In this document: positions 48,481-61,720 of the stretch, piece by piece
How positions within the stretch are numbered: position 1 is the first letter of the stretch
How the letters are laid out: each line of letters opens with the position of its first letter
Origin: Sminthopsis crassicaudata
Taxonomy: Eukaryota
DNA: 64,000 nt
Reading direction: 5' to 3'
Assembly (NCBI RefSeq): GCF_048593235.1
Contig: NC_133617.1
Location: 13,211,607-13,275,606 of the forward strand
Position numbers and translations under genes: made by a program
Notes under the pieces: generated by a model
What the model saw: the letters and a program-made list of their open reading frames with translations, nothing else
The model's database searches: none
What the model was told of the DNA's origin: nothing

Positions 48481-48849
48481 CTGGTTGACTTATTTATTGG
48501 GGAAAGGGCATCTGCTCGCCCGGATGCGAGGAGGGGAGAGAGGACCAAAGATGGAGAGACTTCTCCTCTCTCCCCTCCCCCAAGGCCAGGTCCAAGGCCA
48601 GTCGGGATGCTCGGGGAGGGTGTAAATAGAGGGGGAGGGTATTTCCCAGCCTCGAGGGTCCCGCGTGCGCCTGGGCCAATGGGAGCCCGGCCTTCTAGAG
48701 CGGGGAGGGGGACCGGCGGAATGCACTTGTCCAGTCCCCTCTCCTTCCATCCACCGGGGCTGAGCGGGCCTGGGGGCGTGGCCCTGGGAAGTTTTAGCCC
48801 CTCCCCCTCCCCGACCATCCTCTCCCAGCTTTCCAGGACGCTGCGGTTC

Positions 48850-50050
48850 TTCTGGCCCAAGAAGATTTTCGGGCGCCTCTCCCTGTTCCCATGTAGCCCC
48901 CAAGGCCCGGGTCGCGTTGCGCCGTAGCGGCCGTGTGGGAACTCGAACCCAGGCCCCCGGGCGCGGGGCCGACCTCGCTTCCTGCGCTCCCCCATCTCCC
49001 CGCCATCCCCGGCCCCAGCCATGGACCACAAGATCCTTGAAGTCCAGAGGTTCCTGGAGGACGGCTCTTTTCCGGACCACTTGGTGACCGCTTCCCAGAA
49101 GCGAGAGTTCCGCAGGCGGGCCCAGAACTTCGTCCTGGAAGGTGAGGGGGGGGCGGCTGCGGATTATCCGCTCCCAGCGTCCTGGGGCTCCCGACCACCC
49201 GATCCCGGTGGGGGCTCCCTGAGGGCGCGCAGGAGCGGAGCCTGAGACTCGGAAGTCGAGCCCAGCCGGCCATGGAAGGAGAGAAAAATTGGGTGGGGGT
49301 GGGGGGCAGCAGCCGCTGGGCTGGCCTGGCTGCAAGCTAGAATGTGTGAAAGGCATCCGTGCGTAGGCGGCCTCGCCTGGAGGCAGCTCGTGAAGGCTGC
49401 GCGAGGCCCAGCGGGCTCTCTGACCCTAAAAACAGTGGGAGCCACGGCAGGTTCTAGAGGGAGGGGAACGCTCTGACTCGGGTTTTGGACTTAAGCGTGG
49501 AGGCGGCGAGGGGCCGCCTGGAGGCCCGAGGGCAGACTGGTCTCCCCGCCCCCTTCCGGAAGGGTGGCGGGCGTCTCCGCTGGCTAAAGTTCGGGCCGAA
49601 CCCCGAGGGAGCGAGCGGCGGGGCCCGCGGCCCGGCCTCGTTTCCAGCCCGAATCTCCGGAAGTGCGCGAGGCCCGGAGCTAGCGCCGGCCCGCCCCCGC
49701 CTCGGCCTGGCTGCTGGAAGTGACCTCAGCGGTCTCCTGGGCCCGCCCGCCCCGCCCCCTCCATTAACGCTGCGCCTCGGGGCGAGGGGGCGGCGCGGGC
49801 GCGTCTGGGGTGGGATCCTCGCGCCGCGCTTCCCGCGGCTCCTGGGGCCGCGGGGCCTGCGCTCCGGCCCCTCCCCCCGCCCGGGTCCCACAACTCTCCC
49901 GTGGAGGTTCCTGGAGCGCGTGTCGCCCCTCCCCCCGGGCGCGGCACCGTGGGCTGGGGGGGAGGGGGGGAGGAGCAGGCTTCTGGGGCCGGGATCCGAG
50001 GGCAGTTTGAAAGTGTCCCGACCCCGCCGTCGTTTTCTGAGTCCCCCAAG
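48850..50050 (+). promoter_or_regulatory. CpG island over the first coding exon and intron 1 of the integrase-like gene
   Basis: CpG-dense; Kozak ccagccATGG at 49021; ETS CCGGAAGT at 49657; palindromic CTTCCGGAAG at 49553; GC boxes near 49690. Confidence 0.7.
49021..49141 (+). CDS. GIN-like gene coding exon 1 (121 nt, phase 1)
   Basis: ATG ... GAAG|gtgagg; MDHKILEVQRFLEDGSFPDHLVTASQKREFRRRAQNFVLE. Confidence 0.8.
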
Positions 50051-53000
50051 CCCCCCCGGCAGCCAGCTCCGGACAGTTGTAGCTCCCTGGTTGGATGGCA
50101 GTGGGGGCTCCCGCTCTCAGTTCTTAGATCCTGGAGTGGTGGGATGGGGGGAGGGAGGGACGTGTGAGACGCACAGACGCACCCAGTGGGAGGGGCTGCT
50201 GGGATAGGCTGGCTGGGAGCCCCCTCACTTTGCCTTCATCCTCTCAGTTGCTCCACTTCTGTGTTCCAGAAAGCAGAAGAGGACCCTCCCCCCGGTCCGG
50301 CTCTTCCCCCCCTCCTCACCCCCCCTCGTCCGGCTCTACCCCCTCCCCCAGCCTGCTCCTCTCCCCGGGGCCTCGTGTCCCCCCTCCCCCTCTGCTCCCC
50401 CTCATTTTCTCCTTTTGGGACTCTCTCCTAATAGAATCACTCCAATTCCGTGCTGCTCCTTCCCTTCCAAGCTAGCCTCCCCCCCATGGGGACTATGGGA
50501 GAAAATCCCTCTCCGCAGGCCGGGAGGGGGGCACTCGGGGCCTGAGTTTTCCCTCTCCGCCGCACTGTAACCGCACCCAAGTTGTTGTGAAGATGGAGCC
50601 GGTACCCTAGGCTGGGAGAAGGCCTTTGGGGGTGCCAGTCCCCCATCCATGTGTCCCCTGGCCGAGGCCGGACCCTCCAGAGGGGGAGCGGCCCCCTCCT
50701 CCTCCCTCCCTCTGCTCTGAGGGTGAGATAAGAATTAAACAGCAGGCCTGGGCGGGCCCAGCATTTCCCCGTCCAAGGAAACTGAGGCTCAGAGAGGTGG
50801 GGAAGGGGCTTGGCTAAGTCCCAGGGTTTACATCCAGGGTCCCTGACTCCAAACCAGCCCCACTCCCGTTCCCTCCCCCTCCTCTCGGTCCCGGCCCTCA
50901 CCTGCTCCCTGGATGCTGGATCTGCCCTGATTACTCGGCCTTCTTCCCATGTCTCCTCCCTGGCAGCCACAAGCTCCCAGGAAAACTCCAGCCTGCCCCA
51001 TTAATCTCCATTCTGGCCGTCTGGCTTTCTGGTCTACCACTCGATTGCTCCCCGTGTGTTTATTGAATTAAGTTAAATTAATATACATTAATAAATAGTG
51101 AATAACTAATTAATATTAAGTTAAGTACAATCTCTGCCTATATCCCTCGCTGAAGGGACTCTACAGAGGGGGGGGGGCAAAGTCCCATGTCCAGGAGTAA
51201 CATAACCCACAGAGGCTGGAATGGAGCTCCCCATCCCTCTCCCCTCTGACTGATGGCAGCTAGGGGGCGCCATACTGCGTGGAGCCCAGGATTGGGAATC
51301 AAAACCTACTCTGATCAATCAGACATTTAGGGACCCAGCCCAGGAGGTCACTTCACTCTCTTTGCCTCCGTGTTCTCATCTGTAAAATGGGCGGAAGAAG
51401 GAATTGTAAATCCAGTCCAGTGTCTTTGTCAGAAACACTCTCCCCGATCTAACGATTTTGCTCGATTCCCGGGACTGGTTTCCCGTAGAACTGAGGGCTC
51501 CCGTGGCGGGAGGTACAGAGCGACCCGGAGACCTAGAGGAACCTTTCAGAGCAGTTAGCATAAGCAAAGTCGCGCTAACGACTGTCCGAGGTGACGTCGG
51601 ACAGGGGCCGTGTTCGGACTCTCGGCTCCACAGCCGGCTTTCTCTCTTTCTTTCTTTCTTTTTTTAAAGCTTTTTATTTTCAAAACATGGGCAGATGATT
51701 TTTCAGCTGCCCTTGCAGAGCTGCATGCCCCTAGTTTTCCCCTCCTTCCCCCACCCCCTCCCCCGGATGGCAGGTAGTCCCATACGTCCAGCACGTGTTA
51801 CCCATTTAGGCAGTTATCTTGTCCAGTATTCTTCCCAGCACACCGGGGTGGGGCCATTAGGCACCCCTTTGCCTGCATGGATGGGGGAGCTCACCCTGGC
51901 TGCCTCCCCCTCAGACTGGGCTCTCCTTCCCCAGGGGAGGGTCTGGAATTGTTCCCTGGGGGGGTTCCTTCCCCAGGGGAGGGTCTGAGTCACCCTTTTG
52001 GGGAGGGTTTCCCCCCAGGGGAGGAGGGTTGGGGTCAGTGTCTTGGGGGGAGGGGCTCCTTCAGTAACCAAGGCATCTCCTCTGCAGACCACAACCTGAT
52101 GTTCGTCCGTCTGGGCAAGAAGTCTCTGGTGGTGCTGGACCGGAAGGACCGCCTGGAGCTGGTGAAGCAGGCGCACGTCACCTCCTCCGGCCTGCATTGC
52201 TCCCTGCAGGAAACCAGGAAGAAGGTCTCCTTCAGCTACTACTGGCCCAGCCTGGACCGAGATGTCAGCAAGTGGGTCAGTGGAGGAGGGTCCCGGGCGG
52301 GGCAGGGGGCGGCTCCCGGAAAGGAGAGACCCCGAGAACCTCGGACTCCTGCGCGCTTGTCTTCCTGCAGGAAGCCTCAGTTTACTCATCTCTAGAATGG
52401 GAGGCGTTAAGTCTTTCACTCATTCTCTGCTTTTCTGCGCTCATCTCTGCCTGGAGAGCCTCTTGGCCAGTGAGCTTTCCCTTGTGGGAACAGGAACAAA
52501 ATCCAGGCGGGATCCTCCTCCCTGCTGGGCCCGTACTTGGTCATTATTATTCCTCGGGGGTCGCTCCCCGTTCTGCCCATTAGCTGTGCACTCCCTCCTT
52601 TCCCAGGGTTGGGAAAATTGAATGAGATCATACTTGTTAAAAGGACTTATTGCCACAATGTCCAGCACACAGTAGGCACTTAATAAATGCTTACTCCCTT
52701 CCGTTATAATCGTTGCAAATGCAGCTTCCGGTTCTCTTTCCTTCCTTCACATAAGTCTACCTGAGATTCTTCTCGAGCCTTTGCTCACTACTTTTTGTGA
52801 TTTGCTCAGCCAGTCCCCAGACCACGGGCACCTGGCTTTGTTTCCAGGCTTCCCCAGGTCAGCTCTGAATGTTTTGGTATAAATGGGGTCTTTTTTGACT
52901 TCTAGGGGTTCATACAAACAATTTTTTACAGAAGGGGAAAACTGAGGTTCAGGAGAAGAGACTTGTTCAAACTCGGCATCACTGGGGGTCTAGGGAGGGA

Positions 53001-56000
53001 GCTTCTCCATCCCTCCACACTGCTTCATGGGGGCTTCCTCCTTGGGCCCATCTCAGGGATTGAGGGTGAGGTGGGTGGGGGCAGACCTTAGGGCGTTCTC
53101 TTGGAGGCTCTTCGCCCTTTTTTGTGCCTGGTAAAGATCCCAGCGGGTCCCGGCTGCTTGGGATCCCAGCGTGGCAACCCCCACAGTCTCACCCCTCTCG
53201 CCACAGGTCAAGCAGTGTAACTGCCGCCAGAAGGCGTGTTCAGAGAAGTCTCTGCCCATCCAGGTAACGGTCCCAGGGGGGCGGGGGACAGGAAGGCAGG
53301 GCGGCCCCGCTGCCACGGTGGGCTTCTGGCTGGCTGGTCCTCCTGGACTCCCCCCAAAGAAAGAGAGAATCTTGATCTTGGGGACAGAATCTGAGCTTGA
53401 CGGTCTTGCTCCGTGGGACCTTGGCCAGATCCCTTGTCCATTCCCCAAATGAGAGGCGGCGGGTGGGCCCTAACCCTAAGAGACGGTAGCTGGATGTCTT
53501 GCCCCCTGGGGATCCTGCCCTGAGGGGTCTGGGATGGATGGGCACATGGACGGTCCTCTTCTCCACAGGGGGTCAGCAGCAAGAGCCAGCGCGCTAGGGA
53601 CCCGTTGCCCGTGCTCCAAGTGGAAGCGGTAAGTAGGTGGGGACGGGGAGGAGAGGCGAGAAGGACCCGGCTCTGAGCCGGGCACGCCACAGATAGTGTC
53701 TCCTTTGGGCTCCTCAGCACCCTGGGAGGGGATCTGTCACGATCCCCATTTTAGTTAAGGAACATTGCACAACTAGTGAGTGTCGGAGTCTGCATTTGAA
53801 CTTGGGTGGCCTTGGTTCCAGGGCTAGTGCTCGATCAGCCAGTGGCTCAGGCTCTGCCCTTATACAGCGTGAGCCCGGAGACCTGCCTCCTACCCTTTCC
53901 CAGAGGGGCTTTGGAACACTCGGGCCTGGGGAAGTGCATGGGAGCCGCTGTCGGCCATCTTCCCCTCCTCGCTCCCCCGTCCCGGTCCAGGATTTTAGGC
54001 CCTCTGGGTGACTTTTTATAAGTCTCCCGACCTCTTCCCCTCAGGTCACTCAGGCTTTTGAGCAGGTGGGCCTGGGCCTGGTGGGGCCCCTGATGGAGAC
54101 TGCCAACGGCTTCCGCTTCATCCTTTTGTCCGTGGACGCTTACTCCCGGTGGGTCGAAGCCTCACCACTAAAGGAACAAAATCCCGTGGAAGTGGCCAGC
54201 GCCCTGATCCCCTTCCTCCTCCGATTTGGACGTCCCCAGCTCCTGGTCACCACTCTTCGAGTTCCATTTGTGAGCCAGGTGAGTCAGCTATCCGCCCCCC
54301 CCTCCCATCCAGAGCAGGCTGGGTTCTCCCCCTTGTAATCTAGAACAGGATCCCCACCCCCTTCTAGAATTGGAGTTCTGCCCCCTCCCTGCTCTAGAAC
54401 AGAAAGGCTAGGCTGAGGGAGGGGGGGCCAGGCTGAGGGAGGGGGGCCAGGCTGAGGGGGGGGGCTAGGCTGAGAGAAGGAGGCCAGGCTAAGCGGGGGG
54501 GGGGGGGGGGGGTAGGGCTGAGCTCCTCCTGTTCTTGCCTTCTGAAACTCACGTGGTTCCCCCACAGTGCCCCTGGGGTCAGCCTCAGATCATTTCCCTT
54601 CCTGCCCCCTTAAGCCCTCTAGTCTCCATGGCTCCCCACACCCTCCCCTGCAACCCGCCATCTCTCCTTCCACGGCCACCTTTCCAGACCCTCAAGGCTC
54701 CTTTTCAGTGACCCCTGTCCCCTGCAGGTGAACCGGAGTCTCCATCGCCAGCTCCAGGGCTTGGGGGTGCCCCTTGGCAAGCTGGACATCATCGTGTCGG
54801 CGTTCCAGCCGAAGATCAATAGCATCGTGTCCCTGACCGCCAGCTCTGTTAGGAGGTGAGGACGGGCCGGCCCCGGTCTCTGGTCTCACCGGACCTGCTG
54901 CCCACAGAGAAGCCGGGGAGAGCGAGGAAGAGAGCTGGTCCTTATCAGCTCTGGGGGAACCCAATCCCAAGTGGTAGAGCTGGATTGGAACCCAGACCCC
55001 CTTATGGTTAGAGGGGCTAGGGGTGGAGAAAAAGGGAGAATCTGAGAAAACGGGGGTGGCGAGGTGATGGCCGAGGCTGAGCTTGACAAAACCTGTCCTG
55101 GGCTTCGGGGTGTGGCGCGGGATGGCACTCAGGGGGATTGGCACGGTCGGGTGAGAAGAGCCCTGCACTGGGGACCAGAAGGCTGAAGTTAAAATCCTAA
55201 TCCTGCCCTCCACTGGCTGGGAGAAGAAGCATAGAAATCCCTTCGGATGCCTCAGTTTCTTTATCTGTAAAATGGGTAGGGGAGGGGGCTGTTACTGAGC
55301 TGAAGGTATCCTGACTTGGGATGATTTAGGAAATTGAGGATGTGGTGGGGGAGAGGGTCCGTTCCCGCGGCCCTAACTAAGAGAGCTCCTGGCTGCTTTC
55401 AGGGCCCTGTGGAGCCTGGTGAAGGGGGAGCTGGAGAAGTGGGACCAGGTCTTGGACAGAGCCCTTTTCTCCCTGAGGACGGCCGTGACTAAGAACAAGA
55501 GGAAAAGTCCCTTCCAGTTACTTTATGGTCGCAAGCCCAGGGCCCCTCAGGACGTTCCCTCCTATTTTGACGTGAGTGCTGGGCTCCTGGCTCCTCGGCG
55601 CATTCTACGCTGCAGGCCGCCTCTCCTGGCTGGGTCTCCCGGGTCCCGCTGCGCCGAGAGCTGCTTCCTCTCCTTGACCGCTGGTTCTCTCGCCTGCCGT
55701 TAGCCTTTCCTTCTCCTGACCCTGACCCCCAACTCTGGGGCCCCTCCAAAAGGATTCACACCCAGAGCATTAGGATTTGAGCATCTGGGACCCAGAGCAG
55801 GTTACTTGAGACCCACGCCACCCAAATGCCCTTTGTGGGCCGGGGGCAGCAGCCTGGCCTGGGTTCTCATCTCCTCGTGCCTTGGCTTGAGCCAGCTCCC
55901 TTCGGTCAGCTCCCATTCATAAGTATGAGGAGGGGGCTCCCTGCCCTGGCCTTTCTCCTTCCTTTACTTTGCAGCATTTTCTGGAGTTCAGATAAACATG

Positions 56001-57281
56001 GAGGGTTAGCAGGAGGGGCATTGGGCCGGAGCTTAGAATACCTGGGTTCCCGAAGGATTCTCTGTAGAACTGGTGGCCAGTGACTATCTATAGTTACCAT
56101 GACCCCCTCCCCTCTGTGACCTTCTCTCCTCCGTGTACCTCCAGGTGGTTGCAGCAGACACCGTGGGGGACAGTGCAGGGGCTACCCATGGTGATAAAAG
56201 GCCCATGGGTGCAGCATCTGCACCAAAAGCCGTGGGGCAGCAACCGAAGCGACAGATCATCCGAGAGCCCACTCTACAGGTCATGGCGAAGCCCGGTGTG
56301 AAGCCGGTCCAGCAGCCCGTGCCAGAGCCCATCCAGCAGCCCGTGCCAGAGCCCATCCAGCAGACCGTGCCGGAGCCCGCCCAGCAGCCTTTAATGAAGT
56401 CCATCCAGCAGCCCATGCCGGAGCCCGTGTTGGAGCCCTCTCAGCAGCCCTTAATGGAGCCTGCCCAGCAGCCCTTAATGGAGTCCATCCAGCAGCCCAT
56501 GCCAGAGCTCACCCAGCAGCCCATGCCGGAGCTCACCCAGCAACCCATGCCGGAGCTCGTCCTGCAGCCCGTGCCGGAGTCCTCCCAGCAGTTTGTGTTG
56601 GAGCCCTCCCAGCAGCCCATGCTGGAGCCCTCTCAGCAGTTCGTGTTGGAGCCCTCCCAGCAGTCCATATCAGAATCCAGACAACCATCCAGGCCAGAGA
56701 CCATGGGGCAGTTCATGCATCAGCTCATACCAGAGCCCATGAATCAGCATATGTGGCAGCCCATGCTGGGGGCCATCAACCAATCTATGCAGCCCATCCA
56801 GCAGCTCATGCAGCAGACCATGCAACAGTCCATGATCCAGTCTCTCCAGCAGCCCATGCATCAGCCCATTCAGCAGCTCATACTTCAGCCCATGCAGCAG
56901 CCCATGATGGAGTCCATCCAGCAACCCCTGCAGCAGCCCCTGCACCAGTCTATGCAGCAGCCCATGCTGCAATCCATGCAGCAGCCTATCCAGCAGGCCA
57001 TGCCCCAGCCCATCCAGCAGCCCATGCAGCAGGCCATGCCCCCACCCATCCAACGGCCCATACCCCAGTCTGTGCCGTGGCCCATGGCCCAGCCTATCCA
57101 GCAGCCCCTGCAGCAGCTCATCCTGGCAAAACCTATGCATCCACCCATCCCCAGGCTGGCAGAATGTCCTGTGGTGAGCGGCTGGGACCAACGGACAACT
57201 CCCAGCCTCGACAACCCCTGGGAAAAGTGGGAGCCTGGTGGAGGAGCCTTCTGGACTCAATGGAGGGAGCCTGGCAACTAG
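49021..57281 (+). CDS. Domesticated GIN/Ginger (Gypsy-integrase-like) gene with dead DDE core and Q/P/M-rich repeat tail, 677 aa
   Basis: join(49021-49141,52088-52275,53207-53263,54045-54278,54728-54855,55403-55571,56145-57281) = 2034 nt, six GT-AG introns with matching phases and no internal stop. Integrase hallmarks: H-x6-H...YYWPSLDRDVSKWVKQC; GPL..T.NG.RFILLSVDAYSRWVEASPL; RFGRPQ; WDQVLDRALFSLRT...SPFQLLYGRKPR. Confidence 0.88.
52088..52275 (+). CDS. GIN-like gene coding exon 2 (188 nt; HH half of the Zn finger)
   Basis: ctgcag|ACCAC ... TGG|gtcagt; DHNLMFVRLGKKSLVVLDRKDRLELVKQAHVTSSGLHCSLQETRKKVSFSYYWPSLDRDVSKW. Confidence 0.88.
53207..53263 (+). CDS. GIN-like gene coding exon 3 (57 nt; CC half of the Zn finger)
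   Basis: ccacag|GTCAAG ... CAG|gtaacg; VKQCNCRQKACSEKSLPIQ. Confidence 0.8.
54045..54278 (+). CDS. GIN-like gene coding exon 4 (234 nt; core N-half)
   Basis: ccctcag|GTCACT ... CAG|gtgagt; VTQAFEQVGLGLVGPLMETANGFRFILLSVDAYSRWVEASPL...PFVSQ. Confidence 0.9.
54728..54855 (+). CDS. GIN-like gene coding exon 5 (128 nt, phase 2)
   Basis: ctgcag|GTGAAC ... AGGAG|gtgagg; VNRSLHRQLQGLG...VSAFQPKINSIVSLTASSVR. Confidence 0.82.
55403..55571 (+). CDS. GIN-like gene coding exon 6 (169 nt)
   Basis: ctttcag|GGCCCTG ... GAC|gtgagt; ALWSLVKGELEKWDQVLDRALFSLRTAVTKNKRKSPFQLLYGRKPRAPQDVPSYFD. Confidence 0.9.
56145..57281 (+). CDS. GIN-like gene terminal exon (378 aa; QQP[MVL]xE / QQPM repeats)
   Basis: Pyrimidine tract plus ctccag|GTGGTT, in phase 0 with exon 6; 1137 nt open to TAG (ORF track 56133-57281). 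Confidence 0.8.
   Translation: MVAADTVGDSAGATHGDKRPMGAASAPKAVGQQPKRQIIREPTLQVMAKPGVKPVQQPVPEPIQQPVPEPIQQTVPEPAQQPLMKSIQQPMPEPVLEPSQQPLMEPAQQPLMESIQQPMPELTQQPMPELTQQPMPELVLQPVPESSQQFVLEPSQQPMLEPSQQFVLEPSQQSISESRQPSRPETMGQFMHQLIPEPMNQHMWQPMLGAINQSMQPIQQLMQQTMQQSMIQSLQQPMHQPIQQLILQPMQQPMMESIQQPLQQPLHQSMQQPMLQSMQQPIQQAMPQPIQQPMQQAMPPPIQRPIPQSVPWPMAQPIQQPLQQLILAKPMHPPIPRLAECPVVSGWDQRTTPSLDNPWEKWEPGGGAFWTQWREPGN
56304..57122 (+). repeat. Coding tandem repeat, 24-nt then 12-nt units (CAGCAGCCCATG core)
   Basis: ccagcagccc(a/g)tgcc(a/g)gagc repeated; unit lengths are multiples of 3. Confidence 0.9.
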
Positions 57282-60779: not shown

Positions 60780-61720
60780 GCGGGGGAGGGCGGGGCCCAG
60801 AGAGCCGAGGGGGCGGGCCCGCGGATCCCGGATCCAGGCGGCGGGGCGAGCGGAGCCGGGGCCCGGACGGGGCCGTTCGCGGGGTTCGAGGGAGCCAGCG
60901 CGGGAGCCCCCGGCCGCGCCGTCTGCGGCCCGAATCTCCCCAGCCTGGGCGTGGCCGGTCCAACGAGCCCAGAGCGACCCCCGCGGGACCCCTGCGCGCC
61001 CCTGCAGGCTCCCGGCCGGCCTCCCAGGGTTCCCGGACGTCGCTTTGCGTGGCTGGAACCCGGGCACCCGGTACACGCGTGGGGCCCGCCTCCTCCCCCC
61101 TAGCCTCTCCCCCCCCCATTCCAGAAGGGCCAGCCAGCGGGGGCGTGGCCCGGAGAGTGTGGCTCGAGGATTGGCTGGCCCCGAGGGTTCTGAGGGGGCG
61201 GGGCCAGTGCCGGGGAGTTTCAGGGGGCGTGGCGTGGGCCCGGGCGCTCCGAGGGGGCGGGCCGGGAGCTCCTGCAGCCGCCGCCGTCGCCGCCGCCGCA
61301 GCCGGAGGAGGAGGATCCGGGGCCTGGCGCTGGCTGGGCGGCTGTGGGGCCCGGCAGCAGCAGCCGCCGCCGCCTCGGCGGCCCCTCGCTCCTCCTCCTC
61401 CTCCTCCTCGGAGCGGCCTCCTCCCTGCCCGGGCCTCGGGCTCGGCGCGCCCATGGAGCTGCACATCCTGGAGCACCGGGTCCGGGTGCTGAGCATCGCG
61501 CGCCCCGGACTCTGGCTCTACACGCACCCGCTTGTCAAGCTGCTCTTCCTGCGGCAGCGGAGCCGGTAAGGCGAAGGCCGGGGGCGCGGGGGCCTGCCCG
61601 CCCCCGGGCCCCTCCCTGCCGGGGCTGGGGGGGGGGCAGAGAAGCCCGTCCCCCCGCCCTCCAGCCCTCTGTCTCCGCTGCTCCCCGAGCCCGCTCCGCA
61701 CCCCGGATCATCCCCACTTT
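60780..61720 (+). promoter_or_regulatory. CpG-island promoter of CASTOR1
   Basis: CpG-dense; ATTGG at 61170; several GGGGCGG/GGGGCGTGG boxes at 61140-61263; GCC-repeat 5' UTR; Kozak gcccATGG. Confidence 0.85.

Follow-up and report, generated by a model that had tools for sequence, protein, structure and literature searches.

LOC141557864, a gene of the dunnart Sminthopsis crassicaudata, lies in a 64,000-nucleotide stretch of contig NC_133617.1 (assembly GCF_048593235.1, positions 13,211,607 to 13,275,606 of the forward strand; hereafter the window, to which all positions refer). We consider it very probable that LOC141557864 is a single-copy marsupial host gene derived from a Ginger1 ('GIN') transposase, within the sub-lineage of GIN2, and that its exon-intron structure is largely inherited. 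For the most part its introns were most likely inherited rather than gained, a reading that is based on alignments with GIN2 and with fish relatives, not on GIN1. The initial annotation of the window, made from the letters alone, had proposed descent from an intron-bearing Ginger1/GIN DNA transposon on the grounds that intron positions and phases were taken to match those of GIN1. Descent from such a lineage is supported by five of the seven introns, which match exon junctions deduced for relatives, and by an integrase-only clade that the gene shares with GIN2, while a topology test stops short of rejecting its grouping with Gypsy proteins that bear a reverse transcriptase (RT).

Introns at exon junctions deduced for GIN2 and fish relatives

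LOC141557864 is encoded on the plus strand, starting with an ATG at 49021 and ending with a TAG at 57279-57281, in eight coding exons separated by seven introns, all of them of the GT-AG type with pyrimidine tracts. The exons add up to 2094 nt, or 697 codons and the stop, which equals the length of the RefSeq protein P0008 (697 residues). In tblastn comparisons every exon of the window matched P0008 at about 100%; this protein stands in for the spliced product, the exons having been searched singly and not as a joined model. The initial annotation had described six introns, the one after LPIQ reaching as far as VTQAFEQ. A 60-nt exon at 53569-53628 lies between these two points, and the six-intron model stayed in frame without it because the length of this exon is a multiple of three. 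The donors that had been placed were all correct: exon 1 ends one base into the codon that follows NFVLE (phase 1), exon 2 ends after DVSKW at 52275 and exon 5 after PFVSQ at 54278 (both phase 0), and the remaining donors lie after LPIQ (53263, phase 0), within VRR (54855, phase 2) and after YFD (55571, phase 0).

These positions were compared with exon junctions deduced for the relatives. At the NFVLE site, isoforms of Narcine bancroftii GIN2 that start from alternative first exons are dissimilar as far as the split-codon residue, this residue included (Gly versus Cys), and identical afterwards. The last two bases can be the same in codons for Gly (GGY) and Cys (TGY), which fits phase 1 at this site; phase 2 would be compatible as well, and so would phase 0 with the junction one codon further on. 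At the PFVSQ site, isoforms X1 and X2 of the same gene converge exactly at the Val-Asn aligned with the start of exon 6. Nothobranchius models diverge exactly after the homologous site, and carp and Leuciscus models carry alternatives of 3 or 6 residues exactly there.

The fish gene of Paramormyrops provided three further positions. One of its isoforms skips a 24-residue exon that starts directly after the Trp homologous to that of DVSKW and ends exactly before the Val whose homologue opens exon 5, the Val of VTQAFEQ; another isoform has its starting Met directly before this 24-residue exon. An isoform with an alternative 5' exon joins the common sequence at the YFD site, at identical spacing after a conserved Arg-x-Pro-x-x-Val-Pro. 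Carp models also diverge directly after the Trp of the DVSKW site, and one of them continues with Val, as read-through of the donor would give. The cyprinid and tarpon relatives are found at several loci per genome and are therefore regarded as mobile-element copies rather than as one gene.

Over 320 aligned codons, five of the eight junctions deduced in relatives coincide with one of the seven introns of LOC141557864, for a chance expectation of 0.18. The probability of five such coincidences is about 4e-8, and about 6e-5 if one codon of slack is allowed. At the protein level, five of the seven introns are shared with GIN2, the Paramormyrops gene and the multi-copy fish copies. We judge from these alignments that the five are older than the gene, namely intron 1 after NFVLE (49142-52087, 2946 nt, phase 1, GT-AG), intron 2 after DVSKW (52276-53206, phase 0, GT-AG), intron 4 before VTQAFEQ (53629-54044, phase 0), intron 5 after PFVSQ (54279-54727, phase 0) and intron 7 after YFD (55572-56144, phase 0), the last being common to the Paramormyrops gene.

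The two other introns have a different standing. Intron 3, after LPIQ (53264-53568, phase 0), lies in an insertion whose columns, in an alignment of 48 relatives, are filled by marsupial rows only, and it is therefore probably an addition of the marsupial lineage; in Paramormyrops, one exon of 24 residues is the counterpart of exons 3 and 4 combined. For intron 6, within VRR (54856-55402, phase 2), no counterpart junction was found in the isoforms of any relative compared. The introns after LPIQ, VRR and YFD had been put forward as diagnostic of a particular GIN lineage. This idea is borne out only in part: the LPIQ intron is located in the marsupial-only insertion, the YFD intron is also found in the fish gene, and the VRR intron has no counterpart among the relatives compared.

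The residues that the initial annotation had given for GIN1 do occur in the published Gin-1 rows, in columns that align by eye with the NFVLE, DVSKW and PFVSQ sites. Marin is said to have argued in 2010 that GIN2 is a vertebrate gene exapted from a Ginger1/GINA transposon, and that the introns of GIN genes were inherited from the transposon. Bao et al. (2010) describe three introns as identical in position and phase in Gin-1, Gin-2, two Ciona genes and Ginger1-5_HM. Published opinion on the introns of GIN genes is divided, between inheritance from the transposon (Bao 2010) and gain afterwards (Kordis 2011). Inheritance is favoured here, because the same sites are found in the marsupial gene, in shark/ray GIN2, in the fish gene and in multi-copy fish elements.

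Position among integrase-only proteins and rival origins

The best non-orthologous matches of the LOC141557864 protein are integrase-only and belong to fishes, a turtle, a toad, a brachiopod and further invertebrates. Pfam detected an RT domain in none of the ten relatives scanned, one of which carries Ulp1, and a local RT/RNase H probe flagged no integrase-only row. RT-bearing Gypsy polyproteins score just slightly under the best integrase-only matches, so that similarity alone is indecisive on the lineage. A search of the ESM Atlas returned generic integrase clusters only.

Phylogenetic trees were more informative. In a tree of 141 rows, the marsupial clade falls inside a 40-row clade devoid of RT-bearing proteins, with a Shimodaira-Hasegawa-like approximate likelihood ratio (SH-aLRT) support of 96. 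This integrase-only clade has members with Ulp1 or OTU domains, which Bao et al. (2010) give as a mark of Ginger1 transposases. In a more careful tree of 53 rows, the marsupial gene, Narcine bancroftii GIN2 and several vertebrate integrase-only families form a clade supported at 98/99, and the RT-bearing rows form a separate clade (98/96). The Narcine proteins were assigned to GIN2 by near-identity, judged by eye, to the published Gin-2 rows.

Several observations weigh against descent from an intron-bearing Ginger1 lineage. The junctions of the relatives were deduced from protein isoforms and gene models, not from DNA, with a resolution of 0-1 codon and a phase that is only partly determined. 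Some RT-bearing Gypsy integrases also have the N-terminal region, and the stem branch of the marsupials is long, with 1.6-1.8 changes per column. When the marsupial and RT-bearing rows were constrained to group together, the log-likelihood changed by -12 units, and the approximately unbiased (AU) test gave p 0.059, which is no formal rejection at the 0.05 level. This test, and the scores of RT-bearing matches just below those of the best integrase-only ones, would suit an origin from the integrase of a long terminal repeat (LTR) retrotransposon of the Gypsy/Ty3 type. The gene would then have started without introns and gained all of them after domestication, the coincidences reflecting preferred insertion sites; de novo gain is also how Kordis (2011) treats the introns of GIN1. 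We regard such an origin as very improbable. Independent gains would not be expected to produce five exact coincidences with GIN2, the fish gene and multi-copy fish elements, and free trees put the gene in the integrase-only clade with supports of 96-99. Moreover, Pfam searches by exon found no RT, RNase H or protease domain in LOC141557864, and neither LTR-like repeats nor flanking inverted repeats were found around it.

A closer competitor is that LOC141557864 goes back to a duplication of a GIN-type gene that was domesticated already, with GIN2 as the most plausible source, and diverged afterwards; its introns would then have come through gene duplication and not from a mobile Ginger1 element. 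The marsupial clade is indeed sister to Narcine GIN2 in the best 53-row tree, the domain score of GIN2 against the marsupial protein (127 bits) is near that of the best relative (145 bits), GIN2 has eight coding exons (Chalopin et al. 2012), as LOC141557864 does, and marsupials have kept GIN2. However, the sister relation has a support of only 71/16.6, and it dissolves once two other long rows, one a wombat integrase-PHD protein and one from Lingula, are included, the marsupial clade then shifting into a cluster of other long branches. Because long branches attract each other, the sister group may be GIN2, the fish gene family or the wombat integrase-PHD protein. Identity to GIN2 is only about 25%, the two loci differ (OGFOD2-ABCB9 for GIN2, a CASTOR1 neighbour here), Narcine GIN2 apparently has a junction within a region that forms one exon in LOC141557864, and two of the ancestral junctions have so far been seen only in the fish gene. 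Duplication of a domesticated GIN-type gene is possible, though on balance unlikely. Hardly any weight can be given to the idea of a decaying transposon copy or an annotation artefact in which the 'introns' would be chance GT-AG pairs. The weakness of the Pfam match to the integrase core (E 0.097) might be read that way, but the reading frame is intact over eight exons, the integrase part is 85-92% identical among opossum, wallaby, glider and dunnart, in contrast to a diverged tail, and independent RefSeq and UniProt models in six species agree on the gene structure.

Some of the relatives deserve a description of their own. Paramormyrops LOC111861057 (P0027/P0167) and Bombina P0033/P0182, the latter annotated as a PPCDC fusion, are integrase-only sisters supported at 100/100. 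Both core Asp positions are kept in this pair, of which the Paramormyrops member also has a long C-terminal extension and is spliced into many isoforms. The pair may represent a further domesticated Ginger1 gene, as yet undescribed, or else a family with recent activity. In Narcine bancroftii, the two alternative first exons of the GIN2 isoforms P0206-P0209 each encode a version of one and the same N-terminal region, an arrangement that suggests a tandem duplication of the exon. NCBI labels this Narcine gene 'gypsy retrotransposon integrase-like protein 1', yet its sequence matches GIN2.

Protein domains, exons and intronic sequences

The protein has an integrase-only architecture. Searching Pfam exon by exon detected the Integrase_H2C2 zinc-binding domain in exon 2 (E 1.9e-9), the weak match to the rve core in exon 5 and no other Pfam domain; for the marsupial orthologues, the precomputed Pfam annotation lists PF17921 only. 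Alignments revealed that two of the three positions of the catalytic DDE triad are substituted in LOC141557864: the first Asp is replaced by Gly and the Glu position has also changed. The second Asp (54135-54137) is retained, in a column that is invariant in two alignments. The Cys half of the H2C2 finger (53216-53230) reads C-x-C-x-Q, versus the usual C-x-x-C-Q, in dunnart, devil, glider and opossum; the wallaby protein is the sole orthologue with an additional Cys at the canonical second finger position. Zinc binding may be altered by this C-x-C arrangement. The C-terminus consists of a Gln/Pro/Met repeat tail of about 380 residues. Since two of the three catalytic residues are lost, the finger is altered and such a tail is present, the product is probably a non-catalytic nucleic-acid or chromatin binder.

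The exons divide the protein as follows. Exon 1 (49021-49141, 121 nt, followed by a GT donor) carries the ATG and encodes the N-terminal region that precedes the zinc finger; it matches residues 1-40 of P0008 at 100% and aligns with the N-termini of stand-alone integrase-only relatives. The zinc finger is split between exon 2 (52088-52275), which encodes the His-His half of the H2C2 domain, and exon 3 (53207-53263, 19 codons), which encodes the Cys half and matches residues 104-122 of P0008 at 100%. Exon 4 (53569-53628, 20 codons), the one missing from the six-intron model, is flanked by AG and GT, and the ancestral linker that immediately precedes the catalytic core is homologous to its end. 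The RefSeq or UniProt proteins of five marsupials contain exon 4, namely those of the dunnart, Tasmanian devil, wallaby, sugar glider and opossum (P0008, P0001, P0002, P0003 and P0007), and its DPLPVLQVE motif is conserved as far as the opossum. Exon 5 (54045-54278, 78 codons) encodes the first half of the RNase H-like integrase core. Exon 6 (54728-54855, 128 nt) contains the substituted catalytic Glu position, and its end, in phase 2, splits the codon of the last Arg in VRR; exon 7 (55403-55571) encodes the end of the core with a GPY/F-like motif. The repeat tail and the stop codon are encoded by exon 8 (56145-57281), outside the ancestral integrase.

Read-through of the donor of intron 6 would add an Arg codon immediately followed by TGA (54853-54861). 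The Antechinus isoform X2 (P0009) terminates exactly at the position of this donor, which suggests that this truncated, tail-less isoform results from retention of intron 6. Between 54395 and 54520, in intron 5, a G-rich unit of 18-20 nt (GGCCAGGCTGAGGGAGGGG-like) is repeated in a short tandem array, after which comes a long run of G. Well-preserved core fragments of MIR-type short interspersed elements (SINEs), as expected in a marsupial genome, occur in introns at 50770-50840, 51370-51400, 52640-52700 and 55250-55275. The region 48800-49900, which covers exon 1 and the start of intron 1, is very rich in GC and CpG and resembles a CpG-island promoter.

A marsupial gene beside CASTOR and its probable place among Ginger1-derived genes

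Protein searches identified orthologues in six marsupials, Sarcophilus, Antechinus, Sminthopsis, Notamacropus, Petaurus and Monodelphis, with one per species. An exhaustive search of 1.84 billion representatives confined them to marsupials. Its marsupial rows were two full-length proteins and a 220-residue fragment at 87% identity, the species of the fragment being unchecked. The next match, at E 1.6e-47, was a low-complexity one to the tail, and an integrase relative first appeared at E 1.4e-41, with about 31% identity. Downstream of LOC141557864, a CASTOR gene (Castor1_N) starts at 61453; upstream, ten long open reading frames gave no Pfam match. One orthologue per species, no flanking inverted repeats and a CASTOR gene downstream, a neighbourhood seen in the dunnart window, are the features of an immobilised host gene.

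These features also separate LOC141557864 from the systems to which it is related. Its closest sequence relatives are Ginger1 transposons, such as Ginger1-5_HM of Hydra and the multi-copy teleost families, with which it shares a stand-alone transposase gene with a start codon of its own and a coding sequence interrupted by introns. Ginger1 transposons are mobile and multi-copy, have terminal inverted repeats and an intact DDE triad, and often carry a C-terminal Ulp1 or OTU domain, whereas LOC141557864 is single-copy and lacks both inverted repeats and Ulp1/OTU. An active Ginger1 transposon was ruled out by the lost first Asp and Glu position and by the missing inverted repeats.

GIN2 is a vertebrate gene exapted from a Ginger1/GINA transposon (Chalopin 2012, Bao 2010). 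Like LOC141557864, it is integrase-only and combines an H2C2 finger and a degenerate DDE core with an N-terminal region, and it belongs to the same 98/99 clade; deduced exon junctions at NFVLE-type and PFVSQ-type sites are common to LOC141557864 and Narcine GIN2. In contrast to GIN2, LOC141557864 is restricted to marsupials and has a C-x-C instead of a C-x-x-C finger half, a linker insertion of 15-20 residues with an extra intron and the repeat tail. GIN2 lies between OGFOD2 and ABCB9 in marsupials and birds as well as reptiles and fish (Chalopin 2012), and LOC141557864, which adjoins a CASTOR gene, was rejected as its orthologue.

GIN1 is also a domesticated Ginger1-type integrase, found as an amniote gene, and is reported to keep the DDE triad (Chalopin 2012), of which LOC141557864 has lost two residues. 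No GIN1 was present among the best 150 representatives of the exhaustive search, where four short GIN1 motifs were missing too, and word-based searches with the wallaby orthologue or with a cyprinid Ginger1-like protein did not return it. LOC141557864 was accordingly not retained as a GIN1 orthologue, there being no GIN1-like protein among those 150 representatives and marsupials being reported to carry a separate GIN1. Imagin, a Ginger1-domesticated gene of malacostracans (GBE 2026, PMC12863088), offers a parallel by description, not by sequence: it is multi-exon, has kept the H2C2 finger and the core fold, has lost catalytic residues and has a disordered region as C-terminus. It differs in arising from an independent event in crustaceans.

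Another marsupial protein with a dead integrase was found in the wombat Vombatus ursinus (P0036, 435 residues), in which a PHD finger forms the C-terminus. Gln occupies the position of its first catalytic Asp, and it has an insertion at the same linker as LOC141557864. P0036 groups with LOC141557864 through long branches only.

A possible history of LOC141557864 starts from the transposase gene of an intron-bearing Ginger1 cut-and-paste DNA transposon lineage. The element, or a copy of an already domesticated GIN-type gene, would have settled beside CASTOR1 before the split between American and Australian marsupials, and mobility and catalysis would then have been lost. The LPIQ intron would have arisen in the marsupial lineage within the inserted linker. 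Today, the zinc finger and the RNase H-like fold may serve non-catalytic binding to nucleic acid or chromatin, and the repeat tail may act as a docking arm.

The integrase-derived marsupial genes in published catalogues are GIN1, GIN2, SCAND3, KRBA2 and NYNRIN. LOC141557864 is absent from those catalogues, and a literature search found no description of it. Transposon-derived introns in GIN genes are already published. With LOC141557864, the short list of known Ginger1 exaptations gains a lineage-restricted case, and the function of the gene is open to experiment, Sminthopsis crassicaudata being a laboratory marsupial. More tentatively, LOC141557864 might represent a third independent vertebrate exaptation of Ginger1, dating either from the marsupial stem or, followed by a loss in eutherians, from early therians, and might have founded a set of marsupial-specific, catalytically dead integrases with new C-terminal modules; we hold this to be somewhat doubtful. 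If it were true, intron-bearing Ginger1 elements would still have been mobile in early mammals.

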